A DNA stretch of 64,000 nucleotides from Chrysemys picta bellii (Eukaryota), in the NCBI RefSeq assembly GCF_011386835.1, contig NC_088807.1, forward strand, positions 21,576,001 through 21,640,000, written 5' to 3'. The notes under the pieces were generated by a model. That model ran no database searches. It saw nothing but the letters and a program-made list of their open reading frames with translations, and was not told the DNA's origin. A program made the position numbers and the translations under genes. Positions 165 to 59,195 of the stretch are shown here, one piece after another; the stretch's first letter is position 1, and every line of letters starts with the position of its first letter.

Positions 165-3100
165 CCTTCTCATGAGGCCCGTGGACCCTGTTCTTGTGCC
201 AGTGCAGCTCCTCGTGGCCGTGGTGCGGCTCCTCGTGGCCGTGGTGTTCGGTGGTGTTGAATTTCTCTTGGATCTGATGCTCCAAGATGCTGATTTTCTT
301 CTGCAGGGCGTCACGCAGGGAGATGGAGAACAGGGAACTGTTGTGGCTGTGCTGGGGGGTGGGGGTGGGGGTGGGAGGAGGGGACTGTGAGCGAGACCTT
401 ATCATTCTCTCGGTGCCCATCTACCCTGGTATCCCGCCCTGTCCCTGCTACCCTGGATCGTCCCATGGGCCCATCTACCCTGGTATCCTGCCTCATTTGT
501 ACCACCCTGGATTAGACCCATAGGCCCCTCTAGCCCAGCATCCTACCCCCTGTCCCTGGATCATAGAGTCATCAATCCCAAGGCCAGGAAGGTCCAGTGT
601 GCTCACCTAGTCTGACCTCCTGTATTACACAGGCCAGGCTGAGAAAGCGTCAGCGACGGCGAAACCACCACGCTGCTGGGTAAACGGTGCCAGTGGTTAA
701 TGACGCTCACCGTCACAAACCTACATCTTATTTCCAGTCTGTCAGCTCGGGTTCCACCTTCCTCAGCGAGATGGAAGAGCCCGTGATTAAATATTCGTTC
801 CCCCTACGTACTGGGATCAAGTCCCGCCTTCACCTTCTCGTTGTTGAGCTAAATAGCTGGCGCTCCTGGCGTCTCTCGCTCTAACGCAGGTTTTCTAATC
901 CTCTAATCACCCCTGTGGCTCTTCTCTGCCCCCTCGCCAATCGGGCAACGTCCTCCTTGGATGGGGGGCACCAGAACTGGATGCAGGAGCCCCACATTGT
1001 TGCCCCAGGGCCAAATCACCTCTCTGCTCCTACTCGAGATTCCCCTGGTGACGCTTCCCAGGTTCCCGTTAGCCCTTTTGACCTTCGCATCGCACAGGGT
1101 AGCTCAGGGTTCAACTGATTGGCCACTACGACCCCCCCCTCCAAAAAAAAATCTTTTTCAGAGTTGCTGCTTCCCAGGAGAGAGCCCCCCTGCCCCATCC
1201 TAGGAGTCCAGCCAGCATTTGTTCCTAGATGGATACAGGTACATTTAGCCGCATGAAAACCCACAATGCTTGTGTCCAGTTTACCAAGCGATCCAGCTAG
1301 CTCCGTAGCCATGCCCTGGCCTCTGTGTTATTTACCCCCACCCTCAATTGTCGTGTCCTCTGTAAACATCACCGGTGACGATTTCCCGTTTTCTTCCAGG
1401 TCGAAAACGTTACATCGCCTCGGGACCAGGGCCAAGCCCTGCGGGACCCCAGGAGAAACACGCGTGCTCAGCGGCGACGCCCCGTTTGCAGTTACAGTTT
1501 GAGACCTGGCGTCGGCCAGTTAAAAACTTCCGCGTGGGCCGTGCTGGTTTATAACGGTCGAAATGCCGTGTGCTACCACGTGAAACGCCGCCCAGAAGTG
1601 TCAGTTTATTACATCAACTCGCTTAGCGTTAGCAACCAAACTTGTCATCTCAGCCAAAAGCGAGATCAAGTTAGTTTGACGGGATCTATTTCCCATAAAC
1701 CCCTGCTGATTGGCATTAAGTACATTGCCCTCCTCCAAGTCTTTATTGAGTCCTGTATCAGTCACTCCATTAACTTGCTAGGGATTGATGTCAGACCGAC
1801 AGGCCTGGAACTGCCCCGGGTCATATGCTTTATTCTTTGTAAATAGTGGCACATTAGCTCTCTTCCAGTGCTCCAAGACTTATTGGAAATCAACATTAAT
1901 GGGCCAGTGAGCGTCTCAGCCAGCTCTTTTAAAACTCTTGGTTGCAAGTTATCTGGACCTGCTGATTTTAAAAGTCTAACTGTAGTTGCTGCTGTTTACC
2001 ATCCTCCTGAGACACTAGGGGAATGGAAAGTGTGGTATCGTATGATAGGCCATCATCTATTTTCCCCCAAATACACAACAGAAATATTTGTTGAACAATT
2101 CTACCTTTTCTGCTTTATTGTTCATAATTCTACCATTTCCATCTAGCAATGGACCAATACCATTGTCAGGATTCTTTTTATTTTTAATATACTTAAAAAA
2201 AACCTCCTTCTTATTGTACCTAGCTCTGCTGGACATAGACCCTCTGCTGACCCTTTGCTTCCCATATCAATTTTCTACAAATCATAGTAATGAATATAAA
2301 TCAGAAGCTATCAACTTCCCCTTTGTTTCTGATTTATATTCATTACTATCAACTTCCCCATTGCTTCTGATTTATATTCATTACTATGAGCTTCCCCTAT
2401 CTTCTAGTTGTTATACCTCGTTATCTGCCTTCACTTCCTCTCTAAGGTTGTGTTGTTAACCAGCGCAGCCTTTTCCCTCAGCTGTGGTTTTCGGGTGTCT
2501 GGTATAGCGTTCTTAGGCAATTTCCAATGATCATTCACATTTTTCTGATTAAATTCTTCCTTCCGGCTGATTTGGCTTATCATTGTTTTCATCTTTGTGA
2601 AACTGGCCCTTTTAAAGCACCAAGGAAATAATCTCATCACTCTGGACTTTACTCTCTTTGCACATTATGAATACCATCAAGGCGTGGTCCCTTGTACCAG
2701 AGCCACCATTAATTTCTAGCTCCGTGCTCAGTTCCTCATTCTGTTAGGATGAGTAGAATTCCCCCGTGTCGGTGGCTACAGCGTTTGAGACAGGAACTCG
2801 TCAACTAGCACATTTAGAAATTCCCAGAATGATTTAGTGTTGGCAGCACATGGCCTCCAGCGTACATTATTCAAATTGAAGCCCCAGGGATCACGCCGCT
2901 TTTGTTCCTATACGTTACAGGGGGCATACATTGTTGTTCACTCTGGTCCCTAGTGTGCTTCGAAGGGGCTGTAGCGGACTCCAACTAATAACCCTTCTTG
3001 TTCTTTATCTGTTAGGCCATTGATCCCAAAGCGTAGAGCATTTTCGTCCGTGTCGTCCGTGACGCGGAAACAGGGCGTGCCATTTGTGGCGTGGATTTCC

Positions 3101-6100
3101 CTTTCGCCCACCAGGTTTCAGTGATACCAGCTGAATCACCCGCAAGCAAGTCCAAAGCCTCTTGGTTGTTGCCCAGGGGCCGAGCTTTGCTGTACAGGCA
3201 ACGCGAGGCTTTTCCTCCCCTCACATCCTTTGCTTCCTTGATTCATTTTTTCCCCTCAGAATCCTGATTTTAGGAGAAGCCCTCAGCCTGCTCCTCCACT
3301 CGCCCCACTCCCCTCCCATCACGTTCTGGGGACAGGTCGGCCGGAGCCATCAAGCCAAGATCTAACACAGCCGGACGCAACATTTCCTGAGACCCCTGGG
3401 CCTGTCTGGCCTGGTATTTAGGCCCAGCGCCCTACTGAGGCCCTGATCTCCTCCCCTCATACCCCTGCCCCATGGGGGGGGGGGGAATCTGACCCCGCCC
3501 CCCCCGGCCAGGCGGTTCAGGTTTCCCAGACATGCTGAGAAGGGACAAACAGGAAGGAAGAGGCCAAGGGGGTTTATATTTAGCTGAATGCTCCGGCCAG
3601 GACCCGAGCTGCTCCCGCTAATCCATCCCCCTCCTCCCACAGAGCCGCCAGCGCCAATTAGCGGCGGTGCCACAAACCCACTGATGCCAATGGAGCAGCC
3701 TTTGTATGGTGCTGGAGGGCAGCCTGATCCTCCACTAGCCCACACTCCCCTCCCAGAGCTGGGAGAGAACCCAGGAGTCCTGGCTCCCAGCCCCTTGCTC
3801 TAACCACTAGACCCCACTCCCCTCCCAGAGCTGGGAGAGAACCCAGGAGTCCTGGCTCCTAGCCCCCTTGCTCTAACTACTAGCCCCCACTCCCCTCCCA
3901 GAGCTGGGGAGAGAACCCAGGAGTCCTGGCTCCCAGCCCCCTGCTCTAGCCACTAGCCCCCACTCCCCTCCCAGAACAAGGGACAGAACCCATAAGAACA
4001 GCCATATTGGGTCAGACCAAAGGTCCATCCAGCCCAGTATCCTGTCTGCCGACAGTGGCCAATGCCAGATACTCCCAGAGGGAGTGAACCTAACAGGCAA
4101 TGATCAAGTGATCTCTCTCCTGCCCAGGAGTCCTGGCTCCCAGCTCCCTGCTCTAACCACTAGCCCCCACTCCCTTCCCAGAGCCAGAGACAACTCAGGA
4201 GTCCTGACTCTCAGCTGCTCTTCCTCTACGCAGGGAACAAATACTCAGTAACGGACTCTCCACTGTAGCAGAGGACGGTCGAGCCTGATCCCAGGGCTGG
4301 AAGTTGAAGCGAGACACATTCCCGCGGGAAACAGCGTGAACATTTCTCATGGGAGAGCAATTAACCAGCGGAACAACGGGCCCGGCGCACGGTGGATTCT
4401 CCCTCACCGGCAGCGTGGGGCTCGTTCTCTGAACGCTCGGCCCTGGGAACAGCTGGGGGCCGTCCCCGGGCCTGTGCTGTCCAGGAGCTCAGATCGCCTG
4501 ACCACCACAGTCCCTGCTGGTCTTGGATCTGTGACTCTAACCACTAGACCCCACTCCCGTCGAGTGTGCTTTGAGGCATGGGGCACGGGGCCTTTGCCCT
4601 CTAGGAGGTGCCAGCTCTGATCTGCCCCAGGGCAAGGACTGGCTGGCTCAGGGGGGCAGGGAATGGGGCCTGGGGCCAGTCCCCTCTAGGAGGCGCCGAC
4701 TCCCATTCAGCCCCAGGACGGAGACTGGCTGGCTGTGTCCCAGGACCCTGGGAAACGTTCATCTTCCAGAACCATCCCAGTAATTCAAGGGCAAAGGGGT
4801 CTTAACTGGGGTCTTGGCAGATGGTCTTGAAATAGGATCAATCAGTAATTCCTCCGGGCTGGGATCTGGGGGCTGTTTCTACTTAATTAGTTAAAGCCGG
4901 AGGCAGGGGGCTGGGAATCTGGACTCCTGGGTTCTATCCCTGGCTCTGGGAGGGGAGTGGGGTGTAATGGTTTGGGGGGGGGGGAAGCAGGCCATGAGGT
5001 TCCTAACTGGGTGAGTGATGAGAGAGGTTGAGATGATGGAGGAAGGGGGAGGGGGTAAACTGAGGTAATGGGGGCGGGGCTGGTGGTGTTAGGGGGCAAG
5101 CAATGGCAAAGGATGCAGGGGGATGGGGTAGGGGGGGCCGTGGGGAGCTGACCTGATCCTAGCATAGGGGGAGGGGGGGTGATCCTGCCCCAGGGTGAGA
5201 AGGGAGGTTATGGGAGTGACAGTTGCGGACTGATCGGATGGGGTGTGGGGGGACGGGGTGTGGGGGGACGGGGTGTTGAGGGGATGGGGCCTATAAGGGG
5301 CTGCTCCTTGAGCCATCTCAGCATTTAGGGAGGGGGCGGCTGGGGGGGTGAATGGGGCCCCACAGCATCTGTTGATGCTCCAGCCCCTCCTAGAATGACT
5401 CCAGCGTGAGGAAGGGGGGCACTGGTGGGGGGCGGGTGATGGGGGTCAGTGGGCAAGGGGGAGAGGTTAATAGGCAGGGCATGGGGTCCCTGGGGAGGGG
5501 GTCAATGGTCGGGGTGGGGGGGAAGCTGGGGAGGTCAGTGAGGAGGGGGTCGATGGGAGGGATGTATGGCCAGGGGGGCGGTGGGTCAGTGGGGGGGGGG
5601 TTGATGGCAAGGGGGGGTGTGGGTCAGTGAGGAGGGAGGTTGATGGGAGGGCTGTGGGTCAGTGAGGAGGGGGAGTCGATGGCTGGGGGAGGGTCAGGGA
5701 GGAGGGGGGTTGATGGCAAGGGGGGGCTGTGGGTCAGTGAGAAAGGGGGAGTTGATGGCTGGGGGGGTCAGTGAGGAGGGGGAGTCAATGGCTGGGGGGG
5801 TCAGTGAGGAGGGGGGTTGGGAGGGCTGTGGGTCAGTGAGAAAGGGGGAGTTGATGGCTGGGGGGGGTCAGTGAGGAGGGGGAATCAATGGCTGGGGGGG
5901 TCAGTGAGGAGGGGGGTTGGGAGGGCTGGGGGTCAGTGAGGAGGGTGGGGTCGATAGCTGGGTGGAACAAGCCCCCCCTTACCTGGAGGTGCTCCAGCCT
6001 CTCCTTGAGCGATTCCAGCATGCGCTCCAGTTGGGGGGCGCCGGCGGGTGCCTCCCGGGGCGGGTCCTCCATGGTGTTGGGGGCGGCGCTGGCCTTGCGG

Positions 6101-6534
6101 AAGGCGGCCTCGTGCCCGGCGCCGCCCGGGGGCTCGGGGTGCTCGCGGTGCCCGAAGTGGGGGTACTCGTTCTCCCGACCGACCCCCTCCCGGTGCCCGT
6201 GGCTCAGGTTGTCCTCGTGCCCGCCCGGCCCGTGCTCCCCGCCCGCCCGCCCCTCGCACCGGCTCAGCTTGGCTGTCAGCTCCCGCACCGTCTCCCGCTG
6301 GTCCAGGATGGTCTCCTTCTGGTGCACCACTGTCTCCCGCAGGTGCAGGATGGTCTCTTTGGCCTCCTCCAGTGTGCCCGCCCAGTGCCCCCCGGCCCGC
6401 GGCTGCGGGGCCTGCTGGCAGCCCGTCTCCAGCTCCAGGGGCATGGGGCTGCAGACGAACTTGGGCAGGGCATACTCCCCCCTGCTGCCGGGCACCCAGC
6501 AGAGGGCCCAGAGGAGAGCCCAGGCCAGCCACAT
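165..6534 (-). CDS. Neuronal pentraxin-like secreted protein (NPTX1/NPTX2 paralogue), first two coding exons; pentraxin-domain exons lie beyond the left edge
   Basis: Exon 1 CDS is 6534-5983 (184 codons; donor CAG|GTAAGG). It encodes a signal peptide MWLAWALLWALCWVPGSRG, then PKFVCSPMPLELETGC, the coiled coil EEAKETILHLRETVVHQKETILDQRETVRELTAKLSRCE, and PNTMEDPPR...QLERMLESLKERLEHLQ, all matching the NPTX1/2 N-terminus. Exon 2 is 351-165 (acceptor CCCCCCAG|CAC; donor AAG G|GTGAGG, phase 1) and encodes HSHNSSLFSISLRDALQKKISILEHQIQEKF...HEKG. Confidence 0.88.
410..520 (+). repeat. Two degenerate copies of the ~51-bp 'cccatgggcccatctaccctggtatcctgcctc' repeat family
   Basis: Same unit as the tandem array at 34335-34695; further copies at ~19965-20020 and inverted at ~33040-33180. 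Confidence 0.6.
560..3260 (-). mobile_element. Degraded, internally deleted CR1 LINE (endonuclease and RT remnants plus 3' tail)
   Basis: Minus-strand remnants include SRCLYSKARPLGNNQEALDLL...GITETWW (CR1 endonuclease start, ~3200-3110) and QPRVLKELAETLTGPLMLISNKSW...RPVGLTSIPSKLME (RT, 1947-1762). A CR1-type 3' end (atcatagagtcat...ctagtctgacctcctg) lies at 560-640. Many stops and frameshifts. Confidence 0.88.
3740..4210 (+). repeat. Tandem/dispersed ~70-bp GC-rich repeat 'gggagagaacccaggagtcctggctcccagccccctgctctaaccactagaccccactcccctcccagagc'
   Basis: Four to five tandem copies here. Others, on both strands, at ~4530, 4910, 11540-11630, 17030-17130, 26300-26570, 41530-41700, 42510-42590, 53225-53430, 57950-58125, 61180-61300 and 62630-62920. 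Confidence 0.85.
3991..4123 (-). mobile_element. CR1 3'-end fragment
   Basis: cataagaacagccatattgggtcagaccaaaggtccatccagcccagtatcctgtct resembles the reverse of turtle CR1 3' tails (from memory). Confidence 0.65.
4300..4430 (+). mobile_element. Old CR1 3' fragment
   Basis: ...gagagcaattaaccagcggaacaac...ggtggattctccctcaccggc resembles the CR1 terminal RT/3'UTR segment. Confidence 0.45.
5420..5945 (+). repeat. G-rich ~28-30-bp tandem repeat (gggtcagtgaggaggggggttgatggctggg) next to the NPTX-like exon 1 donor
   Basis: More than 12 visible degenerate copies; explains the spurious Gly-rich ORFs. Confidence 0.85.
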
Positions 6535-6999
6535 CCCGGCACCCGCCGGACCCCTCGCCACCGCCCCAGCCTTCCTCCCACGGAGGCGCCCGGCTGATTT
6601 GTGCCAGCGGCCGGTTGGCTCGGTGAGCAGCTGGGACTTTTCTGTTTCTCGCCGCCCCCCGGCACCATCCCGTCCGGCTCGATTTCCCAAATCCCCTGGT
6701 GATGGGCGGAGGGCGCCCGTCTCCCAGGAGACGGGAGAATTAGACGGGCAGGTTAATGGGCTTAAGGAGTCGTGGCAAAGCTCCCCCACCCACCCCTGGC
6801 AACGGGACCCAGGCGTCCTACAACCAAGCTGGCAGGGATCAGGGGCGTTTGGCAGATGAAAGGATTCTAAGGAACTGGGAGGGATTTAGGGAGGGGAAAT
6901 GACACACCGGGACACCGGGGGGCTTTCCACAGCCACCGGGAATGAGCCCCCCGCACGGCACGGGGGGGGGGGGTGCGCCCAGAGCCAGACATCTTCCCT

Positions 7000-7150: not shown

Positions 7151-7261
7151 TGATGGCATGGGAGTGAATCCAGATTTGCACCAGGGGGGCCATGGAGTTT
7201 ACAGTTAAGCCCCCCCACCCGAGCCATGGGCTGTTGGATATAACACAGTAAACAATCCAGC

Positions 7262-7425: not shown

Positions 7426-10400
7426 TTACTCGACCACGTTGAACTGAACCATCCCCGCGGCTTCCCGGCCGTCCCCCAGGGCCTCCCGCAGCTGGGTCCA
7501 GAACACGTCCTGGGCCTCGGGCTGCTCCGGCCAGTGCAGGTAGCTACGCTGTTTCACCAGCTTCCGCAGGCGGTGGTAGGGGGAGAGGCTGCGGGGGGGA
7601 GAGGCCAAGATCTGAGCCCCAGTACCCACGGCACAGGGCAACCGCGCCCCACAAGCTCCCCCAGAGCCAGCACCACCCCCTGCTCCCCACAGCACCCCCA
7701 GGAGTGCCCCCCAGAGCCAGGGCCACCCCCTGCTCCCCACAGCACCCCCAGGAGCTCGCCCCACAGCCAGAACCCCCCCCCACACACACTCCCCACAGTG
7801 CCCCGGGAGCTCCCCCACAGCCAGTGCCCCCCTGCTCCCGTGGGAGTGCCCCCAAAACCAGCACCACCCCCTGCTCCCCACAGCACCCCCGGGAGCGCCT
7901 CCCACAGCCAGCACCACTCCCGGGAGCACCCCCCACAACCAGCACCACCCCCTGCTCCCCACAGCACCCCCGGGAGCGCCCCCCACAGCCAGCACCATCC
8001 CCTGCTCCTCGCAGCGCCCCTGGGAGTGCCCCCCACAGCCAGCACCATCCCCTGCTCCTCGCAGCGCCCCCCACAGCCAGCACCATCCCCTGCTCCCCAC
8101 AGCGCCCGTGGGAGCGCCCCCAAAACCAGCACCACCCCCTGCTCCCCACAGCACCCCCGGGAGCGCCTCCCACAGCCAGCACCACTCCCGGGAGCACCCC
8201 CCACAACCAGCACCACCCCCTGCTCCCCACAGCGCCCCCGGGAGCGCCCCCCACAGCCAGCACCACCCCCTGCTCCTCACAGCGCCTCCCACAGCCAGCA
8301 CCACCCCCTGCTCCCCGCAGCGCCCCCGGGAGTGCCCCTCACAGCCAGCACCATCCCCTGCTCCTCGCAGCGCCCCCCACAGCCAGCACCATCCCCTGCT
8401 CCCCACAGCACCCCCGGGAGCTCCCCCCACAGCACCCCCGGGATCTCCCCCCTGAGGCAGTGACCCCCCGCCCCGCTACCCCCACCTCACCGGTAGCTGG
8501 GGATGTCCTGGAGGAAGACGACGACCAGCGGGTCGTGGCCCTGGTAGTAGGTGCGGGCGCAGGCCAGCTGGATCTCCAGCGAGCACCACTCGCTCTCCAG
8601 GGCGCGGGCGCTCAGCAGGCACAGGGCCTTACGGCTGCTGCTCACCCCGCGCTGCACGTTGTCCAGGTAATAGGCCCCGGGGGCGAAGTCGCGGGGCCCA
8701 AAGCAGAGCCGGAACCGGGGCTGCCCTTCCTCCTCCAGCTTGGCCAGCAGCGTCCGCACCACCCAGGCCTCGTCCTCGGCGCAGCAGGAGACGTAGGCGT
8801 CGTACTGGTAGCCCCGCCGGTCCCGCCGCAGCCGGCCCCGGCCCCAGGCCCGCACCAGGTAATAGCCGTAGCGCAGGGTCCAGCCCAGCTTGGCCCCGGC
8901 CAGGGACCCCGCCAGCATCAGGAAGGTGGCGGTGAACGACCACGCGAAGAAGACGACGCCCAGGTCCACCCAGCAGAAGGAGAGATCGTGGGCTTGGAAG
9001 AGCCCCTCGCTCACGCCAGGCCCCAGGCAGAGGTAGGAGCCCAGCAGGGCCACCTGGACCCCCGGCTCCGCCGCCGACCAGTTCTGGAACCAGGCGTTCT
9101 CGCAGGAGCAGGCCAAGGGGTTCCCGGCCACGTCCAGGAAGCGCAGCGCGGGCAGGCCAGCCAGCGGGGCCCAGCTCACGTTGCGCAGCCCGTTCTCCCG
9201 CAGCGAGAGCGACTCCAGGGAGGCCAGGCTGGAGAAGACCTCGCCGGGCAGGTCCCGGAGGGAGCTGCCATCCAGCCCGAGCCGCCGGAGGCTGCCCAGG
9301 CCTTGGAAGAGCCCCGGGCGGAGGCTGAAGGGCCCTTCCCGGCTGGGGTAAATGTCGGAGAGATCCAGGTAGAGGAGGCCAGCCAAGGGAGCCAGCGAGA
9401 GGTTGAGGAAGATGCCGCCAGGGTTGTCCCTCAGGTAGAGCTCCTGGAGGTTCCCCAGCCCTTGGAAGAGTTGGGAGGGCAGCCGGACGGGGGGCCGGGC
9501 CTCCTGCGAGCTGAGATCCAGGCACCGCAGGGCCGGCAGGCCGGCGAAGGGGGCGGGCGAGTCGTACTTGCTGTAGGCCAGGAGGCGGTTGCGGCTGAGG
9601 TCCAGGGTCTCCAGGGCCTTCAGGCCCAAGAAGGAGCCCTGGGAGAGTTTGTAGAGACCGTTCTGGGCCAGCGAGAGGTGGCGGAGGGAGGTGAGCCCCT
9701 TGAAGGCCCATTTCTGGAGGGTGAGGATGCGGTTGCTGGAGAGCAGCAAGGTGTGGAGATGGTGGAGGCTCTGGAAGGCGGACGTCTTGATGTACCGGAG
9801 GTTGTTGTCGCTCAGGTCCAGGGTCTCCACCTTGCGGGCGTAGACCAAGGTGTCACGGGTGACAGATGCCAACTGGCAGCCCTGCAGCAGTAGGGTCCTC
9901 AGGGAGGCCATGCCCAGAAAGGTCCCCTTGTAGAGGTAGGTCAGGCGGTTCCTGGACAGGTCCAGGTGGGTCAAGGCGCTGAGGGGCCGGAAGACGCCGT
10001 CTTCCAGCTTGGTGAGGTGGTTGCGCCGCAGGACGAGGACCCGGAGCCGGGGCAGCGACCCGCCCCAGGCGCTCTGCTTCAGCTCCTGGACCTTGCACTT
10101 GTCCAGCGAGAGGGACTCCAGGTGGGGGAACAAGCGGAAGACGCCCCCCTGGAGCCGGCTCAGCGGGGTGGTGGACAGGTCCAGCCAGGTTAGGTTGGTG
10201 CAGGCGCCCAGTTGGGCCAGCCGGGACGGCGGGACCTTGGAGTGTTTGATGTCCAGGCTGGTCAGCGCCGGCAAGCTCTCCAGGACCTGGCAGGCCAGCC
10301 CCAGGTCCGAGTCCAGCGCCGGGCGCATGCTGGACCAGTGCAGGGCTGTAAGGTTGGGCAATGGCAGGCCCAGAAGATGGGAGATGTTGAGGGGGTTTTC

Positions 10401-11174
10401 GTCCAAACTCAGCTTCTCCAGGCCGGGCGCGGCGCGGAAGGAACCGGCCGCCAGCCGGCTCATGTTGTTGCGGGTCAGGTTGAGCGAGCGCAGGCCGGGC
10501 AGGGAGCAGCGGGCGAGATCCAGCCAGGCGATGCTGTTGTTCCGCAGGTTGAGGTCCCGCAGGAAAGGCATGGAGAGCAGGCCGGGGCCAGGGCACGGGG
10601 CGGAGATCCGGTTGGAGTCCAGGTCGAGGATGGAGAGGTTGGCCAATTTCCCGGCGGCCGTGGCCACCTCCTGGAGCCGGGAGAGCTGGTTGTGGGGCAG
10701 GTGGAGCTCCTGCAGGCCGGGCTGGGCCGCCAGGGCGGTGGGGTGGAGGGCGGCCAGGGCGTTGCCCCCCAGAAGCAGCACCCGCAGGCCCGTCAGCTCC
10801 GCCAGCGCCGTGGGGCCCAGGGCCGCCAGCCGGTTCTGACTGAGGTCCAGCAGCTCCAGCTCCCGCAGGCCCCGGAAGGCGCCGGTCTGCAGGGCGCGGA
10901 TGCGGTTGCGGTCGAGCCGCAGCTCCCGCAGGCGGGGCAGGTGGGCGAAGGTGGCGGGCGCCAGGCCCTGCAGGGCGTTCTGGGAGGCGTTGAGCCAGAG
11001 GGTGGAGTTGGGCAGCGGGGCGATGGCCGGGCCCAGCTGGGTGATGCCGCGCCCAGCGCAACTGGCGTAGCCTGGCAGCTCGTTCGGCAGCAGGCACCAG
11101 GTGAAGCCGAAGGCGCCGGCATAGCGGGCACAGGTGGCGGCTGCAAGGAGCCAGAGGGGCAGGGCCAGGGGCAT
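7426..11174 (-). CDS. Toll-like receptor, TLR11 family (TLR13-like; TLR13/21/22 group), 948 aa, 2 coding exons
   Basis: Exon 11174-8491 encodes a signal peptide, FGFTWC LRRNT, many LxxLxLxxN LRRs, LRRCT (GNPLACSCENAWF...YLC), a transmembrane segment and most of the TIR domain. Intron 8490-7589 is phase 2 (TAC CG|GTGAG...CCCCGCAG|C CTC). Exon 7588-7426 encodes LSPYHRLRKLVKQRSYLHWPEQPEAQDVFWTQLREAL...VVE*. The IPSYRLSPYHRLRKL motif is closest, from memory, to TLR13 IPNYKLSSYHRLRKL. Confidence 0.93.
7660..8450 (+). repeat. ~50-bp minisatellite (cacagccagcaccaccccctgctccccacagcacccccgggagcgcccc) filling the TLR TIR intron
   Basis: About 15 degenerate copies seen directly; source of several long low-complexity ORFs. 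Confidence 0.9.
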
Positions 11175-13330: not shown

Positions 13331-13522
13331 CCGTTAGCCCAGCGCTCGCTCTCACCTGCTACCTCAGAGCTCAGACTTTGGCACCATCCGTCCCCATCTC
13401 CTGGGATGAGTCAAAACTTGTCCCCTGGGCGTTACTGGCGCCACTTCCTCATTGTGCAACACGGCGACGCCGTCGGAAACCTGCTGCGGAAATTACAGCA
13501 CCCGGGTCAATGCGCAGGGTGT

Positions 13523-14800: not shown

Positions 14801-14879
14801 TCCCCATTGCACATCTAAGACTGTTATATTACAATGACTGTTCATATTTGGCTACTGACCTTAGTACTTAGAAGGGAGA

Positions 14880-37200: not shown

Positions 37201-40200
37201 CTCCTCCTTGGCAGCTGGGGCCCCGGACGCCAGGGTCCCCAGGTCCCGGTGGTTGCAGAGCAGGTTGCGGGTGATGTTCTCCCGCAGCGACACCAGCAGC
37301 TGCTCCTTGGACACCTGCACCACGAAGCCGGCCTCCAACTTGGCCGGCGCCGGCTGCCCCCCGCCTTGCCCCGCCGCCGGCTCCTCCTCCTCCCCCCGGC
37401 CCCCCTCCGCCTCGCCGTCCGAAAAATAGGCCGAGTCCCGGTGGGTCGTGGCCAACCCCCGCCCTGTGCCCGCTTCCTCCTCGGCCCCCGGCGTCTCCTC
37501 CGACAGTGTCAGGTCGCTGGTGGACTCCGAGATGGGCGTGGGGGGCAGCTGGGCGGCATCTCCTTGCCCGGGCGGCTCCCCGTCCTCTTCCTCCTCGGGC
37601 TCCCGGACGAGGAGCTCCGGGGAGAAGGTGCTCTCCGTCTCGTAGCCGCTGTCGGGGAACTTCTGGCCCGGCGAGGAGAAGCGGGAGGCTGGGCTGCAGC
37701 CCTCGGAGGAGCTGGTGTTGGAGGGGAGATCCAGCGAGTCCCCGGAGTCCAGCGGGCCCCTCCGCCGGCCCACTGGGGCTGGGCCAATCTCCAGCCTGGC
37801 CGCGAAGCCGTCTGCGGCCTCGGGCACGATGGCGATGGTCTCCTCGTCGGCGCTCTCCGCCAGCGTGGCCAGGGGCGGGATCTCCACCGGCACAATGACG
37901 CTGCAGCAGGTGGCGGTCAGGCCGGGGAAGGGCGAGCCCGGCGGCCGCCCGGCCGCCCCCCGCTTGGGGTAGTCCTGGAGTTCGTAGCTCACCACGGCCG
38001 TGCCCATCAGTGGGTCGTAGAACGCCGAGGGAGGGGGCGGCACCCCGGCCAAAGGGGGTGGGGCGAGCGGCCCGGCCCCGCCCTCTCCGGCCCCGGCGGG
38101 GCCCTCTCCCAACAGGATGGGGCAGTCGGACAGGGAACCCCGCTCCACCTTGAGGGAGGAGTCGTCCTCGGTGCCATAGCTGTCGCGGTGGGGCCGGGGG
38201 ATGGGGGCGTGGTTGCTCCAGCCACTCACAACCTCCCCCCGGCCCGGGGCGCAGCGGCAGCGCCCGCCCCGGCTGCAGAGCGGGCAGAGCAGGGGGTTGC
38301 GGCGCCCGTCCCCGCCGCTGCTGGCGTCCTCCCCGTCCGTGCTGCCGGCCGAGCTCTGCTCCTCCATCAGGGAGGGCTCCCGGTCCCAGGGGGGCGAGGG
38401 GCGGAACTCCGAGGGGTCCCCCGCCAGCGTCTCCCCGGCCCCCCGCTCCTCCAGCCCCTCGCAGTCCCAGCCACGCTGCTGTTCCTCCAGCTCCTGGTAC
38501 ACGTGGAGCAGGGACTCCCCCAGGAAGATGCCCCCCGGCGCCGGATCCGTCAGCGAGGTCTCCTGGATCTCAGCCCGGAAGGGGTTGGCGCTGCGCCGGG
38601 CTGGCTCCCGAGACACCGAGATGAAGGGGTTGGTGGCACCAGGGGCCCAGCTGGCCGGCCCCTCCGGCAGGAGGTGGGGGAGGTGGTGGTGGGCCGGGGG
38701 CGGGGGGCTGCCCCGGATCTCTTCGATGGGGTCCCAGTCGGAAGGGAAGAGGGGCTCTGGCGGGGAGCCGGGCACCCCGTATTGGCGCTCGTAGACGGGG
38801 CTTGGGGTGCCGACGGTGCCCTCGGGCCCTTCCCCCTCGCCGTGCTCCTCCAGCCGGATGTAGTACTCGCTGCTGACCGAGGGGCTGCGGGCGCTAATCA
38901 CTGGGACCACGCTGGGCGTCTCCAGGCTCTGCCGTGCTGGCGCCTCGTAGAAGGGGTTGGCGCCAGGCACGGCCAGGCCGCCGTTGCTGGAGGGGGTGGC
39001 CCCGGGGGCCGGGCCGGCCTTCCAGCGCCCCAGCCGGGCCTTCTCCCACATGTACTCGAAGTTGAGCCCCCGGCTGCTCTCGGTGACAGTGAGGACGTCG
39101 TCCAGATCGGCCCCCTGGAAGCCATCCAGCAGCGGGTAAGCCGAGATCTCCTCCGAGCGGCGCCGGTGTGGGGGGGAGGCGGCCGGCGAGCGCTTGGGCT
39201 TCAGGGCGTTCCAGCGCCACTCAAAACTTTCCTCCGCCTGCGCGTGGCAGCGCTCCGTCAGCAGGTAGGTCAGCTGCAGGTGCAGCTCCTCCAGTGTGGG
39301 GCGCTGTGGCGCCGGCAGCCAGCATGACTGCATCACCTCGTACCTGCAATGGGAGGGAGAGGGGGCGGTCAGGGCAGGGAGGGACAGAACAGTCAGAGAA
39401 CAACAGTCGGAAAAAGAACAGCTGGAGAAGTGGAATAACCACCGGAGAGATAGAGACAAGAGTCGGGAATAAGGCAGCTGTAGAGACTGAAGAACAGCCA
39501 GAGAGACACAGAAGGACCAGCAGAAAACAACAGCCGGAGAGACAGAGAAACAGCTGGAGAGAGGTGAAAGAACAGTCTGAAAACAACTGCCAGAAAGAGA
39601 CAGAACAATCGGTAAACAGACAGAACAGTCAGAAAGTAACAGCCAAAGATACAGAAGAACTGTCAGAAAGAGGCAGAAGAACATCCAGAAAAAAAATCAG
39701 AGAGAGACAGACGAACAGTCAGGGGGAAAAAAACAGCCTGTCAGAGAGAGAGAGAAGAACTGCTGGAGAGAGAGAAAACAGTCAGGAAATAACAGCCAGA
39801 GAGAACAGCTGGAGAGAGAGGCAGAAGAACAGTAAGAAAATAACAGCTGTAGAGACAGAAGACCAGTTGGTGACAGAAGACAGAAAAAATCAAGAGAGAC
39901 AGAAAAAAACAGTCCGAAAATAACAGCCAAAGAGACAGAGAAGAACAGTCAGAAGCATCAGCTGGAGAAACAGAAGTCAGAAAGAGCAAGAGGGGAAAAA
40001 ACAGCCAGAGACAGAAGAACAGCCAGAAAAAAACCCCAAGAAAAGTAGAAAATAACATCTGTAGAGACAGAAAAACAGTCGGAAATGGAAGAACAGTCAG
40101 AAAAAAACACTCAGAGAGAGGGAGGCAGAGGACCAGTTGGAAAACAACAGTCAGAGAGAAAGAAGAACGGTCAGAAGAGAACAGCCGGAGACACAGAGCA

Positions 40201-42168
40201 AAGCAGGACAAGACGAATGGGAGAAAAGGACCAGTGACGGGCCCCAGTGACAACCCAGCCAGGAACCACCTGCCGCTGTCAGCGATGGAAGAGCCCGTCA
40301 GGCGCACACCGAGTCCGGTGGTCCTCAGCCCTACCAGGCTAGGGTCGTGGCCAGCCAGCTCCCCACTGGGACCTGCCGGGGAGGTGGGGCAGCTGTGGGA
40401 CAGCTGTGGGACAGGGACCCAGCACTCACCAGTAGTCAGAGTAAGGCAGCTTCAGGCGCGGCTTGGCCAGCTTCATCTGCTGCTCTTTGATGACGAAGGC
40501 GAGAACCTCCTCGTCCGACAGGTGCCGGTAGGGCTGGCTGCCGAATTCAAACAGCTCCCACATCGTCACCCCCAGGGACCTGGGCAGAGCAGGGTTACGG
40601 GGTGAGTGCAGGGACCCTTGCCCGGCCCTGAGATGCAGCAGCTCTGGGGTGGGGCGCGGGGGCTGGGTATATGGGGACCCCTCACCCGGCACTGAGATGC
40701 AGCCACCTCTGGGGTGGGGCTGGGTATACGGGGACTCCTCGCCCGATGCTGGGACGCGGCCCATCTGGCGTGGGTGCGGGGGCTGGTTAACAGCCATGTA
40801 GAACAGGTAGCTCTGGGACAGCGATCCCCCCAAAGCTTCCCCCTCACTGACCCTTTGCCCCTGAGGCTGGGGGCGGTCCCGGCTGCCCGGGGGCTTAGCA
40901 GGGTGCAGAAGGCGCCAGGACACAGTGCGGGACTCACCAGACGTTGCTCTCCTTGCTCTGATCCACCACCACGAGCGTCCCGTGAACTTCGTCCAGCAGC
41001 TCCGGCGCCACCCAGCGCAGCGGTATCCACAGCCGGTCGGGGGTGATGTAATAATCCTCCTGCGTGGTGGGGAGGGGTCAGCACTGGGCAGGAAACCCCC
41101 CCACCCCGCCCCCGAGTCCCCAGTGCCAGCCAGTCCCTGCCCTGGGGCCGGATGGGAGCCAGTGCCCCCTAGAGGGGACAGGCCCCGTGCCCCAGCCCCA
41201 CACCCCTGAGCCAGCCAGTCCCTGCCCTGGGTCCGGGTGGGAGCCGACGCCCCCTAGAGGGGAAAGGCCCCATGCCCCATCCCCACCCCAGGGCTCTCAC
41301 CTTGTAGTTGTTGTGCGAGAGGCCATAGTCACCGACACGGACGGTGAGGTCGGAGGTCAGCAGACAATTCCGCAGGGCCAGGTCGCTGTGGGGGAACGTG
41401 GGGAGACCCCAGTCAGCCGCAGGCAGCATCCCCATGGGACACCCCGTCTGTGTCCCACCTGCCCTGGGGAGAGCTCTGCCTCCCAGACACCCCCCGCTCT
41501 AACCCCGCCACCCCCCTCCCCTTCCAAAGGTGGGCAAGAACCCAGGAGTCCTGGCCCCCAGTCCTCCCTGCTCTAACCACTAGATCCGCCTCCCCTAGCG
41601 GAGGTGGGATAGAACCCAGGAGTCCTGGCGCCCAGGCCCCCCTCCTGGCTCTAACCTCCCAAATCCCCTCCCCTCCCGCGGCCGGGAGAGAACCCAGGCG
41701 TCCGGGCACTCACCTGTGGATGTAGTTGTTCTTGTGCAGGTGCAGCAGCCCGAGGGTGAGCTCATAGGCCATGCGCTGCAGCGTGCCGAGGTCGCGGGTC
41801 AGCAGGTCGGGGGTCAGCCCGTCTGCCTGGCACTGGGCTCGCAGGTAGCGCTTCAAGTCGCCCTGGGGCGACGGGGGAGGGATGGGGGGGGAGGTCAGGC
41901 AGGCCGGGGCACGGATGGGGGCACCGGGGACCCCGCAGGGGCCACTGTACCCCTCCAGCAATCGGGAGCAACGTCGGAGCCCCCAGCTTCGTTAGCACCA
42001 GCCACGGCAGCTGGTGGAGACTCCCCACCCAGCTTCCGGCATTGTGGGGCTATGACACACAGGTCGGCAGTGTGCGCTGCTCTCAGGAGAGGGCACACTC
42101 CCCTTCTCGGACACACACACAGTGGGGAATTCTGATCCCAGCCATCAGGGGGCAGCAGGACACTCACA

Positions 42169-42218
<50 letters not shown>

Positions 42219-45200
42219 CACACGGCAGTTCTAAACCCAGCCACCAGGGAGCAGCGGGACACACACACACAGAGCAGTTCTGAGCCCAGCCACTAGGGGG
42301 CAGCGCTCCCCCCCATCCCCACGGCAGCCCCCGCCCGCGCTCACCAGCTGGCAGAACTCCATGATGAGCAAGAAGGGGATGGTCTCCGTGCACAGCCCCA
42401 GACACTGCAGGATGTTGGGGTGCTGAAGGCTTCTTCAAAGCGGGGGGCGGGGGAAGGAGAGAGAGAGAAAGCACTGTCATTCCTCATGGCCACAGCAGCA
42501 CCCGGACGCCTGGGTTCTATCCCAGCATTCTATGTGGTGGTTAGAGTGGGGAGGGGGCTGGGAGCCAGGACTCCTGGGTTCTCTCGGCAGCTCTGAAAAT
42601 GACTTGGTCTGGGCAAGCCCCACCCCTGTGTGCCTCGATTTCCCCCTCCGCAACGTTGGGGGGGAGGCTCCTGCCCTTTCCGCAAGGGGCAGGAACTTTC
42701 CCGAACGGCTGAAAGATACTGTGGGATCCTCAGCGGAGGGGAGCGGGGGACGATCCCAGTGACTAGATCCCCCAAATCCCGTCCGGCCTCAGTCCCTTCC
42801 CAGATCTTCCCGTACTGCCGGGCTGGGGAAGGAGGGGTCAGGCGGGGGAGGGTGATTTTTAGCTGTGGGACTTTTATCTCGACCCTGTGGCTTTAAACAC
42901 GGGTGTGGCAAGCCCCGCCCGCAATCTCAGTACATCTGGGTCCAAGCAGGACCACCGTGGGCTGCTTTCACGCCACTGCGTTTCCTCCTCTTATCTTTGT
43001 GCTTTAAGGATGCTGAGATGTGGCTGATTCTGGGGTGGGGCATGAGGGCTGGGTATGCGGGAACTCCTTGCCCGGTGCTCAGATGCAGCCACCTCTGGGG
43101 TGGGGCATGGGGGCTGGGTATACAGGGACCCCTCACCCAGTGCTGAGATGCAGTCACTTCTGGGGTGCCCCCATCCCCTAATTACCGATAGGGCTGAGCC
43201 TCCGACAGGAACTTCCTCTGCTCCAGGGGTCCGGCGCTGACCCGGAGCTCCTTCACCACCACCTGGGCTGGGGTGAAGTCTGAGAAGACCTCCCCCAGGA
43301 TCACCTAGGAGACAGAGCTGACAGCCATACTGCAGGGTCTGTGCCTCAATGGGTCCCCATCCTCCCCCCATGCCTCCACCTGTGCTGGGGACCCCCCCGT
43401 CAGAGGGCAGATTGGAGTGCAGTCTCTGAAGCCCCTCCAGCCCTCGACCTCTCTGGAACGGGGGCTGCAGAGACCCAGCAAACTTGTTTCACATGGGGGC
43501 CACAAATTGGGGTGTCAGATGAGAACAGCTCCCTGTCACTAGAGGGGAAAGGCCCTTTGCCGCATTCCCCACCCCCCTGAGCCAGCCAGTCCCTGCCCTG
43601 GGGCTGGATGGGAGCCGGCGCCTCCTAGAGGAGAAAGGCCCGTGACCCATTCCCCACCTCCCTGAGCCAGCCAGTCCCTGCTCTGGGGACGGGTGGGAGC
43701 AGGCACTCCCTGGATGTGACATCTGTAGAGGCCGGGGCGGCAGATAGTGAAGTGGCAGGGGAGACGCACTCACCTTCCCAAACCAGCCGTTCCCGATCTC
43801 CTGCAGGTAGCTGAGGTGCTGCCGGCTCAAGCCCAGATGCTTCACTAGGTCTGGAAGGGGACACAGGAGGGTGAGGAGGGGGTTGAACTCTGCCAGCGGC
43901 TCCACCAGGGAGAAGGGAGCTCCCGTGAGGGCTCCCTACCCACCTTCATCCTATCCCTCCTCCCAGCAGGAAAGGGTTGGGACCAGGAGGTCGCGATACT
44001 CCTTCAGGCCCCCCCAGGAAGCTGGGCCATCAGCTCATTCACAATGCAGCTTCCAGAATCACTAGCTAATCTAGAACCATGTTCCCAGAGTAACTGCATC
44101 CTCATTGGGTCATCTAGAACATGGCTTCTAATGGAACAGGCACCTCAACTGCTAGTCTAGAATGTGCATTCTAGAGTGGCGTCATCTGCATTTGCTCCTC
44201 TAGAACCTCAATGGTTTAGAATTGGGTTGCAAGAGTCATTGCGCCTCAGAACATTTTTTTCTAATGAAACCCTAGTGTCATAGACTAATCTAGAACACTG
44301 TGTCCAGAGCTGCTTTGTCCACACTAGTTAGTCTAGAATATTACTTGTGTATTAAGAGATTTCCAGAGTGTCTGCATCCAGGATAACTAAGCTAGAACAT
44401 CATTAGTCTAGACCCTCTTTCCAGCATCTGGTTAGTCTAAGCCTGCTTTATAGTGTCACTGCTGCCTCATTGGTTAGTCTAGAACCCGATTTCTTGATTT
44501 GCTGCATCTACACTGGCTACTCTAGATCCCAACCTCCAGTCTCTGAATCTTCATTGGTTAGTGTTGAATGTGGTTACCAGAATCTCTGCATTCTCATTGG
44601 GTAGTCTAGAACATGGTTCTGTGGTCTTTTGCCCTATCTGCTGATCCTGAGTGTGGTATCTAATGTCATTGTGTCTCAGATGCTAGTTCAAGGGTGCAGC
44701 CATTTCAGCTCTTTTGTCTGGTCTAGTTTTGACCTAATAAATCATCAGTGGCTGATCTAGATCCTGATTTCTAGAGTAATTTTATCCACAGTGGTGGGTC
44801 TACAAATAGTCTCTCGACTCTCACTGGGTAGCTTATAACCCTATTTCCAGAGTCACGCCATCCCCACTGGCTAGCCTGGAAACAGAGTCCGTCCATCTCC
44901 ATTGACCAGAATCACTTCTTCCATGTTGATTAGCCTAGAACCAGAGCTTTCTCATCCCTGTCAACTACCTAAAACAAGAGTCACCACATCCCAGTTGAGT
45001 AGTCTAGAACCAGTGCCTCCCCATGGACTAGTTTAGAACCAGTACCACCAATCCCACTGACTAGCCTAGAACCAGAGCCTCCCTGCCTACATAGACTAGT
45101 CTAGAACCAGGACTTCCCCTTGTCCGTTGACTAACCAAGAACCAGAGCCACCCAGTCCCCATTGACTAGCCTAGAACCAAGCTAACATAGCCCATTCCCA

Positions 45201-48111
45201 CTGGATAACCTAGAATCTGATTTTCCAATCCACCCGATCCCCACAGTCCGGGAATGTGTCACACCCAGTTGGGAGACAAGCATGTCCCCTACCTGTCTTG
45301 GGCATCTGCTGGTTGGGAGTCGGGAGCGAGACCTCAGAGAGTGGCAGGATGTAGACATCTGGGATGGACTGGGACGATGAGGTCTCCTCGGCAGGTGGCG
45401 TGTATTCCCCTGAATACTCCTCCCCATCTGGGTTCTCGAACTCCTGCAGGGCGCAGACGGACAGGGATGCATGAGGACCTGGGATATCCATTCTAGGGTC
45501 TATGTCTCTCTAGGCATATGGCCTGGGAACCACAAATCCAAACACCCAGCTGTGCTCCTCCCCAGCCGCCTCTCACCTTGAAGCCGACATCGCCCCGTTT
45601 ACAGCACAGGCAGGTGAGGAGGAGGAAGATGAAGGCCAGGAGACCCGAACAGGAGATCAAGACCACGGCATACGGGGGGGCAAGAGGGAACCGGCCTTGG
45701 GACAGACCATCTAGGGGAGAGAGAAATGAGAGTAAGAACCCGCCCAGCACGGAGATGCAGCCTCTCTGGGGCAGGGCATGGGGGTTGGTTATATAGGGAT
45801 CCCTTGTGTGGTGCTGAGATGACTGTCTTGATTGAGCTCTGTGAGGAAAACCCCATCGGAACAGCGACCAGTTCTGGGCATTATAGGGCAAATAACGCCC
45901 AGCCCCAATTGAAATGGTAATTCGTGGCAAATGCACGATTTGGGGACTCCTCTGAATTCACCCATCAGGAACTGGGCCAAGACCCCTCCCCAAATCACTG
46001 AGTAGGAATTGAGCTTTGACCCCCAACTGCCCCACTAGTAACCAGGCCGAGAGACTGCCTGCAACTCACCCACCGGGCATCAAGCCGACAGCTGTTGCAC
46101 CCCATTACCTCTCCTGAAACTTGGCCCAGAACCGCCCCCAAACATCTGCTCCGAGGACTGGACCCACACCGTCCCCTCAACCAACTTGCTGGGAACCAGA
46201 CCCAAGCCCCACAAACTCTAGTCATCCCAGGGCTCCATGGATCAGTGGTCCAACAGGCCCAGCCACCAGAAACGTGGACCTCTTCCCTCCCCCTAAAACC
46301 ATAGCGCCCCTCCCCAGCGCCCCAACACCCCATCCCCCACCCTCCTGCAGTCACACAACACATGTCACTAGCCCGGGACTGACTAATCCGCTGTGTGGAG
46401 GGGATGGGCCCGGCCACCTAAGGAGAGAAACTTACAACCCAGCTGTGGGGGAGGAAAACCCCCATCCCAACCCAACTACCCAAACGACACTCGAAGTGAC
46501 GGGGTTGGTTTCGGCAGAAGGGAAGGGCGCACAAACAGGTGGTGCCCCATGGAGGGGTGGAAAGCAGGTGGAATAGAGCTAAGGAAGGAGAAATGGGACA
46601 CAGCATGGAGGGAGCGAAGGAAGGGATGGAGGAAGAAGGGGACGGCGGAGGGAGGGAGCAAAGGAAGGGATGAAGGAGGAAGGGGACGGCGGAGGGATGA
46701 AATGAAGGAAGGGATGGAGGAGGAAGGGGACGGCGGAGGGAGTGAAGGAAGGGATGAAGGAGTAAGGGGATGGCGGAGGGAGGGAGCGAAGGAAGGGATG
46801 AAGGAGGAAGGGGATGGCGGAGGAAGGGAGCGAAGGAAGGGATGAAGGAGGAAGGGGACGGTGGATGGAGGGAATGAAGGAAGGGATGGAGGAGGAAGGG
46901 GACGGCAGAGGAAGGGAGCGAAGGAAGGGATGAAGGAGGAAGGGGACGGCGGAGGGAGGGAGCGAAGGAAGGGATGAAAGAGGAAGGGGACAGTGGAGGG
47001 AGGGAACGAAGGAAGGGATGAAGGAAGTACGGCGGATGGAGGGAGCGAAGGAAGGGATGAAGGAGGAAGGGGACGGCGGAGGGAGGGAGCGAAGGAAGGG
47101 ATGAAGGAGGAAGGGGACGGCGGAGGGAGGGAGCGAAGGAAGGGATGAAGGAGGAAGGGGACAGTGGAGGGAGGGAACGAAGGAAGGGATGAAGGAAGTA
47201 CGGCGGATGGAGGGAGCGAAGGAAGGGATGAAGGAGGAAGGGGACGGCGGAGGGAGGGAGCGAAGGAAGGGATGAAGGAGGAAGGGGACAGTGGAGGGAG
47301 GGAATGAAGGAAGGGATGGAGGAAGTATGGCGGATGGAGGGAGCGAAGGAAGGGATGGAGGAGGAAGGGGACGGCGGAGATAGGGAGTGAAGGAAGGGAT
47401 GAAGGAAGAAGGGGACGGTGGAGGGAGGAAGCGAAGGAAGGGATGAAGGAGGAAGGGGATGGTGGAGGGAGGGAATGAAGGAAGGGATGGAGGAAGTATG
47501 GCGGATGAAGGGAGCGAAGGAAGGGATGGAGGAGGAAGGGGACAGCGGATGGAGGGAGCAAAGGAAGGGATGAAGGAAGAAGGGGACAGCGAAGAGAGGA
47601 GAGAGCGAAGGAAGGGATGAAGGAGGAAGGGGACGGTGGAGATAGGGAGCGAAGGAAGGGATGAAGGAAGAAGGGGACAGCGGAGGGAGGGAGCGAAGGA
47701 AGGGATGAAGGAAGAAGGGGACAGCGGAGAGAGGGATGAAGGAGGAAGGGGACAGAGGATGGAGGAAAGGGACGGTCAGGGATGGAGAAAGAAGGGGATG
47801 GCTGAGAGAGGGAGCGAAGGAAGAGATGAAAGAGGAATGAAAAGCAGGTTAGAGCGAAGGAAGGGATTGTGGAGGAACGGTAAGCCGGTTACAGTGACGG
47901 AAGGGATGAAGGAAGCAGAGGAGGGATGGAGAGGTGGAAGGATCGGAGGGGGGGATCCGCCAGGGGACCTGTCCCCTCCACGTGCCCAGACTCCAGAGAG
48001 GCCGTCCAGGCCCGGGTGCTCACCGTTCTCCAGCGGCGCTGCTAACGCTCTGTCCGGGTTGAAATACGACATCGAGGCGGCCAGCAGGACGACGGGCCCC
48101 TGCCTTAGCAT
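34264..48111 (-). CDS. LMTK3: Lemur tyrosine kinase 3 (serine/threonine kinase), 1422 aa, 15 coding exons
   Basis: Exons are 48111-48024, 45710-45577, 45443-45293, 43850-43774, 43304-43186, 42432-42345, 41862-41714, 41385-41301, 41059-40938, 40579-40430, 39343-36927, 36204-35882, 35419-35305, 34958-34725 and 34280-34264. The total is 4269 nt with the frame intact. LMTK3-specific peptides include [143 protein letters not shown] and terminal PIEN* (human PVEN*). Confidence 0.97.
34335..34695 (+). repeat. 51-bp minisatellite, about seven copies, in the last LMTK3 intron
   Basis: Unit cccatgggcccatctaccctggtatcctgcctcctccctgcccccagatca. Confidence 0.9.
35618..35790 (-). other. Two degenerate duplicates of the 3' end of LMTK3 exon 12 including the splice donor
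   Basis: Copy 2 reads [19 protein letters not shown]|GTGAGG (ends 35727). Copy 3 reads [20 protein letters not shown]|GTGAGG (ends 35618). The original is [19 protein letters not shown]|GTGAGG (ends 35882). Confidence 0.9.
39370..40215 (+). repeat. Purine-rich degenerate repeat (gagacagaagaacagtcagaaa) in LMTK3 intron 10
   Basis: A/G-dominated recurring motif; source of hydrophobic and basic pseudo-ORFs. Confidence 0.8.
44060..45190 (+). repeat. Old degenerate ~33-45-bp tandem repeat with core (T/G)ACTAGTCTAGAACC in LMTK3 intron 3
   Basis: About 20 recurring tagtctagaac/tagcctagaac cores; most regular at 44920-45190. Confidence 0.7.
46600..47900 (+). repeat. ~44-bp polypurine minisatellite (ggaaggggacggcggagggagggagcgaaggaagggatgaagga) in LMTK3 intron 1
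   Basis: About 25-30 copies, nearly all purines on the + strand. Confidence 0.92.

Positions 48112-56685: not shown

Positions 56686-59195
<2,510 letters not shown>

Follow-up and report, generated by a model that had tools for sequence, protein, structure and literature searches.

The turtle Chrysemys picta bellii has an NPTX-like gene, a BAIAP2-like gene and an LMTK-type kinase gene close together on contig NC_088807.1. Are the first two simply its NPTX1 and BAIAP2, or are they extra members of their families, as an earlier note claimed when it called them the missing fourth copies left by two whole-genome duplication rounds (2R)? The stretch of DNA that we analysed, which we call the window, is 64,000 nucleotides long (positions 21,576,001 to 21,640,000). 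We think it quite likely that the window corresponds, in the turtle, to the human CYTH2-LMTK3 interval at 19q13.33, with old extra paralogues of NPTX and BAIAP2 in it. There would then have been an old block, cytohesin-2 / NPTX / (Toll-like receptor) / BAIAP2 / LMTK3, that was kept in many non-mammalian vertebrates and reduced in therians. Relative to therians, the turtle would have retained a fourth neuronal-pentraxin paralogue, a Toll-like receptor (TLR), a second IRSp53-type gene and, further on, a SOCS3b-type gene, with RPS9 alongside.

We read genes from stop-to-stop stretches on both strands and checked the candidates with Pfam. The GC content is 0.60-0.73 across most of 4-44 kb, and there are no runs of N. 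Because the window is so GC-rich, long stop-free stretches are frequent and carry little weight by themselves. The three genes in question are:

About 164-351 (borders approximate), minus strand: NPTX-like exon 2, within the stop-free stretch 79-420, as compared with the Natator protein P0003
5983-6534, minus strand: NPTX-like exon 1, within the stop-free stretch 5836-6885, with a start codon, a short signal-peptide-like N-terminus and a coiled-coil
15680-28174, plus strand: BAIAP2-like gene (IRSp53-type, "clade B" in our tree), 14 coding exons; coding sequence 15680-28171, then a stop codon
34720-48111, minus strand: LMTK-type kinase gene, read as LMTK3, from stop-free stretches and Pfam; start codon at 48111, coding sequence ending at about 34720

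The order and orientation of these genes (minus, plus, minus) are as the earlier note had claimed, and so is the kinase start codon at 48111. The end of NPTX-like exon 2, at about 164, is close to where that note had its finding start (165). But the note did not mention a TLR open reading frame (ORF; 8487-11174, minus strand) that intervenes between the NPTX-like and BAIAP2-like genes.

The BAIAP2-like gene

The BAIAP2-like gene is complete in the window. Its in-frame parts, all on the plus strand, are:

Parts 1-7: 15680-15727, 18686-18760, 19809-19892, 20990-21049, 21436-21507, 22027-22164, 23616-23768
Parts 8-12: 24337-24549 (with an alternative donor near 24495), 24932-25168, 26094-26270, 26717-26785, 27114-27287
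Parts 13-14: a small exon within 27822-27884; 28103-28171, then the stop codon

Every border has AG/GT (one GT is in a GTAAGT context) and the phases match between exons. The phases of the last two exons had not matched, which made us suspect a missing small exon. This exon is seen in the annotated protein P0413 from Chelonia mydas, and tblastn puts it within 27822-27884. By tblastn, the window gene is 81-100% identical to P0413, depending on the exon. The claim that both paralogues have intact frames stands for this gene, with 14 exons and consistent splice sites, but goes beyond the window for the NPTX-like gene, whose exons 3-5, which code for the pentraxin domain, lie beyond window position 1.

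The gene has the features of the IRSp53/BAIAP2 family, with an N-terminal IMD (I-BAR) domain and then an SH3 domain. The IMD (PF08397) matches exon 23616-23768 (E = 1e-11, 45.2 bits, cut-off 26.2) and the stretch that contains exon 22027-22164 (E = 2.1e-10). On the stretch 26061-26273, SH3_2 scores 22.6 bits (cut-off 21.8) and SH3_9 scores 29.6 bits (cut-off 30). The remainder of the SH3 is on the next exon, and full-length orthologues of the gene have SH3 matches in Pfam. Given these domains, the protein would be a membrane-bending I-BAR/SH3 adaptor. It shares the IMD, the SH3 and a C-terminal WH2-like end with canonical BAIAP2/IRSp53 (human 17q25.3). In the exons that match, it is about 60-63% identical to the BAIAP2 of mammals and teleosts, and, as with canonical BAIAP2, a convergent LMTK-family kinase gene is found at its 3' end. 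Unlike canonical BAIAP2, the window gene lies beside the putative LMTK3 instead of AATK, is compact (its coding sequence spans 12.5 kb) and sits in very GC-rich DNA.

One explanation is a simple translocation, in which the turtle's own BAIAP2 and NPTX1 (or NPTX2) orthologues moved beside LMTK3 and are the window genes. The IMD exon is far closer to human BAIAP2 (61 bits) than to BAIAP2L2 (18.8 bits) when compared with the Protein Data Bank (PDB); NCBI names the gene in Chelonia "BAIAP2" and the one in alligator "neuronal pentraxin-1"; and a canonical turtle BAIAP2 or NPTX1 is absent among the matches listed. However, the IMD exon is only about two thirds identical to human BAIAP2, which is low for an orthologue. 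Against all cluster representatives, this 51-aa exon had no match above 71% identity, and the matches were mostly to exon-sized fragments.

The family as a whole also argues against a translocation. In tblastn against the window, proteins fell into two groups: those from turtles, squamates, amphibians and coelacanth scored 747-1014 bits, versus about 680 bits or less for the rest, which are mammals, teleost baiap2a, and the canonical squamate and amphibian genes. (Human BAIAP2, P0188, was present in one batch of tblastn and was excluded from later work.) Other jawed-vertebrate proteins are more distant from a lamprey protein than the window gene is. We chose a lamprey IMD as a query because it is roughly equidistant, and its matches included canonical as well as "-like" proteins from many classes. 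A careful maximum-likelihood (ML) tree of 45 BAIAP2-family proteins (a quick version had 81 rows) has two clades, each with support of 100/99 and each present in 100% of the 200 bootstrap trees that we checked. Clade A is the canonical BAIAP2 of teleosts, amphibians, squamates and mammals. Clade B contains Heterodontus, Latimeria, bichir, paddlefish, eel, flatfish, salamanders, frogs, squamates and three turtles. The turtle orthologues of the window gene are in clade B and do not group with mammalian BAIAP2. Among the matches listed from the lamprey IMD search, many mammals fall in clade A but none falls in clade B, nor does any bird.

Both types of BAIAP2 occur in squamates and amphibians: Crotalus, Spea, Leptobrachium and Xenopus laevis have genes in both clades. 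Since each of these four species has one gene per clade, the window gene would be neither a translocated orthologue nor a recent duplicate. The gene is distinct from the BAIAP2 orthologue and belongs to a second clade. The closest relatives of the window genes are all annotated as "-like", as young duplicates are too, so a duplication specific to reptiles or tetrapods might have been suspected. But a shark, the coelacanth and ray-finned fishes are in clade B.

The public names of the clade B gene vary: it is BAIAP2 in Chelonia, Pogona, Bombina and Anguilla, and "BAIAP2-like protein 1" in Erpetoichthys.

The NPTX-like gene

A search with NPTX-like exon 1 gave 286 matches, which are exclusively neuronal-pentraxin-type proteins. 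The exon 1 region is 95-98% identical to "neuronal pentraxin-1-like" proteins of 455-467 aa from the turtles Platysternon, Mauremys and Natator, and these proteins carry the Pfam domain Pentaxin (PF00354). In the window itself, our stop-to-stop reading of 1-5900 on the minus strand found no pentraxin-coding stretch. Exon 1 codes for a signal-peptide-like N-terminus and a coiled-coil like those of NPTX1 and NPTX2. Together with the C-terminal PF00354 of the orthologues, this suggests a secreted, coiled-coil-linked pentraxin. As with NPTX1 and NPTX2, the gene is near a BAIAP2-family gene and divergent from it. In contrast to them, its orthologues have a histidine-rich insert ahead of the pentraxin domain, and the teleost members of its clade have clone names only.

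The best 120 exon 1 matches are "neuronal pentraxin-1-like" or "-2-like" proteins of turtles, alligator, squamates, amphibians and bichir, along with the teleost genes si:dkey-283b15.2 and si:dkey-14o18.2. There was no mammal or bird among these best 120 of the 286 matches. Public annotation names the gene neuronal pentraxin-1 in alligator and Polypterus; several fishes and frogs have it as -2 or "-2-like".

To reach the canonical NPTX genes, we used the pentraxin half of the Natator protein as a query. The length limit of this search admitted proteins the size of NPTX1 and NPTX2, and it barred most full-length members of the window type as well as NPTXR-sized proteins. In a careful tree (a quick tree was also built), the window type is split from canonical NPTX1 with support of 100/100. 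The canonical NPTX1 clade comprises sharks, rays, a chimaera, a lizard, birds and mammals, and the window-type clade comprises tetrapods and ray-finned fishes, including bichir, bowfin and teleosts, with no therian or bird among the sequences sampled.

Comparisons with the solved human domains agree with this split:

Lizard NPTX1: 462 bits to human NPTX1, 360 bits to human NPTX2
Turtle window-type protein (P0003): 343 bits to human NPTX1, 325.5 bits to human NPTX2

The turtle protein is about 120 bits below lizard NPTX1 against human NPTX1, which is another point against a translocation, and the window-type scores are below the cross score between NPTX1 and NPTX2. Given the low scores against both human domains and the 100/100 split from NPTX1, the window type would be orthologous to neither NPTX1 nor NPTX2. 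The presence of bichir, bowfin and teleosts in its clade also argues against a recent duplicate.

A platypus fragment (F7EAL8 or P0434, 203 aa, covering the pentraxin domain) sits on a long branch among the tetrapods of the window-type clade. It scores 306 bits to NPTX1 and 302 bits to NPTX2, and by eye it has the same distinctive C-terminal end as the turtle protein. The platypus thus probably has a copy of this gene, and monotremes may have kept the fourth pentraxin. If so, the loss of the NPTX copy may be therian rather than pan-mammalian.

Alternatively, the BAIAP2-like gene could be a true old paralogue and the NPTX-like gene orthologous to NPTXR, in which case there would be no fourth NPTX. 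NPTXR would explain why the platypus fragment fits neither NPTX1 nor NPTX2; no NPTXR chain was among the PDB matches, NPTXR is outside our tree, and the length limit kept NPTXR-sized proteins out of the pentraxin-half search. However, the window-type gene lies between cytohesin-2 and the clade B gene, and not by BAIAP2L2 and CYTH4, which are the neighbours of human NPTXR. The exon 1 search admitted NPTXR-sized proteins, and its best 120 matches included no protein named "receptor", no mammal and no bird. Also, by eye, the N-terminus resembles a short cleavable signal and not a membrane anchor. We consider the NPTXR explanation unlikely, and we continue with the gene as a fourth neuronal pentraxin.

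The kinase gene, gene order and the age of the block

The stop-free stretches that contain the exons of the kinase gene, all on the minus strand, are:

45496-45957: transmembrane exon
43492-43935, 42234-42434, 41713-41991, 41172-41498, 40937-41077 and 40429-41253: kinase exons
36451-39696: large tail exon (1082 aa stop-free, no Pfam match)
35816-36292, 35123-35419 and 34720-35076: last exons

Three of these exons match PK_Tyr_Ser-Thr (PF07714), and the gene has the layout of LMTK3, with an N-terminal membrane segment, a Tyr/Ser-Thr kinase domain and a very long tail. The earlier note called the gene unambiguously LMTK3. Pfam bears out a kinase of the Tyr/Ser-Thr type, split over several exons, but the choice of LMTK3 over AATK or LMTK2 comes from indirect evidence. 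Residues 22-36 of human LMTK3, a published peptide, line up by eye with the stretch that immediately precedes the membrane segment in 45496-45957, and the contents of the gene's exons seem to agree with the human LMTK3 sequence. With a kinase exon as the query, we found no LMTK3 chain in our copy of the PDB, and an Atlas search with the tail exon was uninformative. LMTK3 is the best reading of this gene, from its cytohesin-2 neighbour, the peptide and the exon contents. According to published work, jawed vertebrates have three LMTK genes, and LMTK3 is reported to be missing in birds.

Two repeats were seen in this gene. At 35537-36050 (minus strand), three stretches in a row each encode a close copy of the short conserved motif with which the LMTK3 exon inside 35816-36292 ends. 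A GT comes after each of them. They resemble a small exon in triplicate or a set of alternative exons; Tandem Repeats Finder listed nothing but 20-bp arrays there. A long minisatellite at 46400-47900 (minus strand) occupies most of LMTK3 intron 1. All three minus-strand frames are open for 398-476 codons in it, so we do not consider the long ORFs there to be genes.

The cytohesin-2 neighbour was seen in other reptiles. A Mauremys locus has, in this order, an IMD/SH3 gene (552 aa), a TLR (952 aa), an NPTX-like gene (455 aa) and a Sec7/PH gene (399 aa). This locus and the window are colinear, with DNA identity of about 76-89%. Alligator has the same four genes, in the order cytohesin, NPTX-like, TLR, IMD/SH3 gene. 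The Sec7 exon of the Mauremys gene failed to discriminate among cytohesins, but its last exon is identical to residues 375-400 of ARNO (cytohesin-2) at 25/25 positions, and no other cytohesin matched. In the tongue sole Cynoglossus, a Pentaxin gene is head to head with a clade B gene, 5.4 kb apart, and genes with NDUFA3, TFPT-type and CNOT3 domains come next. In the rattlesnake Crotalus, the clade B gene is followed by a convergent gene with a 1489-aa product; tblastx of the end of this snake locus against the window gave no matches. Nanorana has a 945-aa gene ahead of its NPTX-like gene, both in the same orientation. For Emydura, Carettochelys, Ambystoma, Gastrophryne and Nanorana, the longest contig listed for the NPTX-like gene equals in length that listed for the BAIAP2-like gene, so one contig probably carries both.

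Because this gene order is shared with alligator and, in part, with a teleost, and because of the splits from the canonical clades (100/99 for BAIAP2 and 100/100 for NPTX), we consider a simple translocation very unlikely. The head-to-head pair in a teleost, and clades that span ray-finned fishes and tetrapods, make recent duplicates extremely improbable. A place between cytohesin-2 and LMTK3 agrees with the human interval at 19q13.33, where CYTH2 and LMTK3 are direct neighbours. The turtle would likewise have a cytohesin-2 gene on one side and has an LMTK-type kinase gene on the other, but with three extra genes between them (NPTX-like, TLR and BAIAP2-like). Human RPS9, NDUFA3, TFPT and CNOT3 are at 19q13.42, on the same chromosome arm as CYTH2 and LMTK3.

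Clade B of BAIAP2 and the canonical NPTX1 clade include cartilaginous fishes, and their sister groups hold both bony-vertebrate lineages. Since both paralogue clades span ray-finned fishes and tetrapods, with some cartilaginous fishes, the duplications would be at least as old as jawed vertebrates, and the splits predate crown jawed vertebrates provided that the root falls outside each pair. The duplications likely arose in the early vertebrate genome duplications, because the cytohesin, NPTX, BAIAP2, LMTK and SOCS3 families recur together on human 17q25, 7q22 and 22q13, a pattern expected if an ancestral block had been duplicated. The paralogues could instead be old products of a segmental duplication that took place locally in an early jawed vertebrate, which would be compatible with trees that give a minimum age and have weak deep support. 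We think that this is improbable, since copies of all of these families share that one set of human regions. The three published LMTK genes, and the a/b pairs of SOCS1-3, which are consistent with two rounds of duplication (PMC6368001), also fit genome duplications better.

Several points weigh against our reading of the block as a whole. Exons were queried singly by reference, and database orthologues represent the window genes in the trees. The NPTX tree was built without NPTX2 and NPTXR sequences, so that NPTX2 is put aside by scores alone, and NPTXR by position, naming and the signal-peptide-like N-terminus; sequences of BAIAP2L2, AATK and LMTK2 are likewise outside the trees. Support is weak (81/69 and 83/79) on the deep branches among clade A, clade B, the BAIAP2L1 group and the amphioxus, lamprey and hagfish genes, so the BAIAP2 tree gives a minimum age rather than the order of the duplications, and A and B need not be sisters. 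Both copies seem to have been lost in placental and marsupial mammals, judging from lists of the best 120 hits rather than a genome search. Finally, there is the canonical turtle BAIAP2 and NPTX1, neither of which was among the matches listed.

What the earlier note had called the missing fourth 2R copies are thus supported as old, separate paralogues, while a strict 2R date goes beyond trees of this composition. Its statement that the block was kept in turtles was too narrow, as crocodilians, squamates, amphibians and fishes have it as well, and platypus probably has the NPTX copy. Its "synaptic module" is speculation from gene adjacency alone. We doubt very much that NPTX, BAIAP2 and LMTK3 form a neuronally co-regulated unit that stayed linked for over 400 million years and whose break-up in therians changed the organisation of excitatory synapses. 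The adjacency is probably a retained old arrangement, which does not imply cooperation.

This is not a new kind of system. Both paralogues are already in public annotation under automatic names, and they are not turtle-specific. Mammals have three neuronal pentraxins and one IRSp53 proper, these families have been studied almost only there, and the loss of fourth copies in mammals is common. We found no literature on the history of the NPTX or BAIAP2 paralogues, or on the teleost gene names si:dkey-283b15.2 and si:dkey-14o18.2. A zebrafish study treated baiap2a and baiap2b as fish duplicates. Our evidence points to an extra pentraxin and a second IRSp53-type gene in the ancestor of jawed vertebrates, which persist in fishes, amphibians and reptiles. 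In a fish, frog or reptile, the extra copy may therefore buffer a knock-out of "the" orthologue, and these genes would be misnamed wherever orthology tables list them as BAIAP2 or NPTX1. The interval would also be a clean case of several adjacent genes that were lost together, between CYTH2 and LMTK3, on the way to therians.

Other genes and repeats in the window

The remaining genes that we read are:

8487-11174, minus strand: TLR ORF; Pfam LRR_8 (E = 5.6e-91) and TIR (E = 7e-11)
57460-59192, plus strand: RPS9 exons, a synteny marker, from stop-free stretches; Pfam S4 (E = 3.4e-6)
61561-62482, minus strand: SOCS3-like gene, probably SOCS3b, with an ORF at 61622-62482; Pfam SH2 (E = 8.9e-12)

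The TLR ORF is stop-free for 895 aa and has an LRR ectodomain and a TIR domain. A gene with matching LRR and TIR domains in Pfam is at the equivalent place in Mauremys (952 aa) and in alligator (997 aa). If its position is conserved, then the TLR would be a third gene that is missing from the human CYTH2-LMTK3 interval.

RPS9 separates the kinase gene from the SOCS3-like ORF. The latter lies 13.5 kb from the kinase start, so the earlier note was right to place a SOCS3-like gene 13 kb away, but it is probably the already published SOCS3b (PMC6368001). Against the PDB, its best but distant match is SOCS3 (115 bits, versus 65.5 for SOCS2 and 62.7 for SOCS1). Coelacanth, amphibians and reptiles have SOCS3b, mammals and birds lack it, and it has been ascribed to the early genome duplications (Wang et al. 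2019, PMC6368001). Like SOCS3b, the window gene would encode a SOCS3-type SH2 protein, and if it is SOCS3b, then the SOCS3 part of the block was already known. In contrast to the published gene, its SH2 domain is in one frame and its SOCS-box-like end is in another, and linkage to LMTK or BAIAP2 is absent from that paper (0 occurrences). The frame change could be a real frameshift, a homopolymer assembly error, or an intron as in some fish SOCS3b genes.

Fragments of a CR1-like LINE reverse transcriptase are at 1000-3200 (minus strand), within intron 1 of the NPTX-like gene. A proline-rich minisatellite unit is found at 12500-14900 (plus strand), upstream of the BAIAP2-like gene, and again at 25050-25500, in an intron of that gene. 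The Mauremys locus has arrays that match this minisatellite, with many matches.

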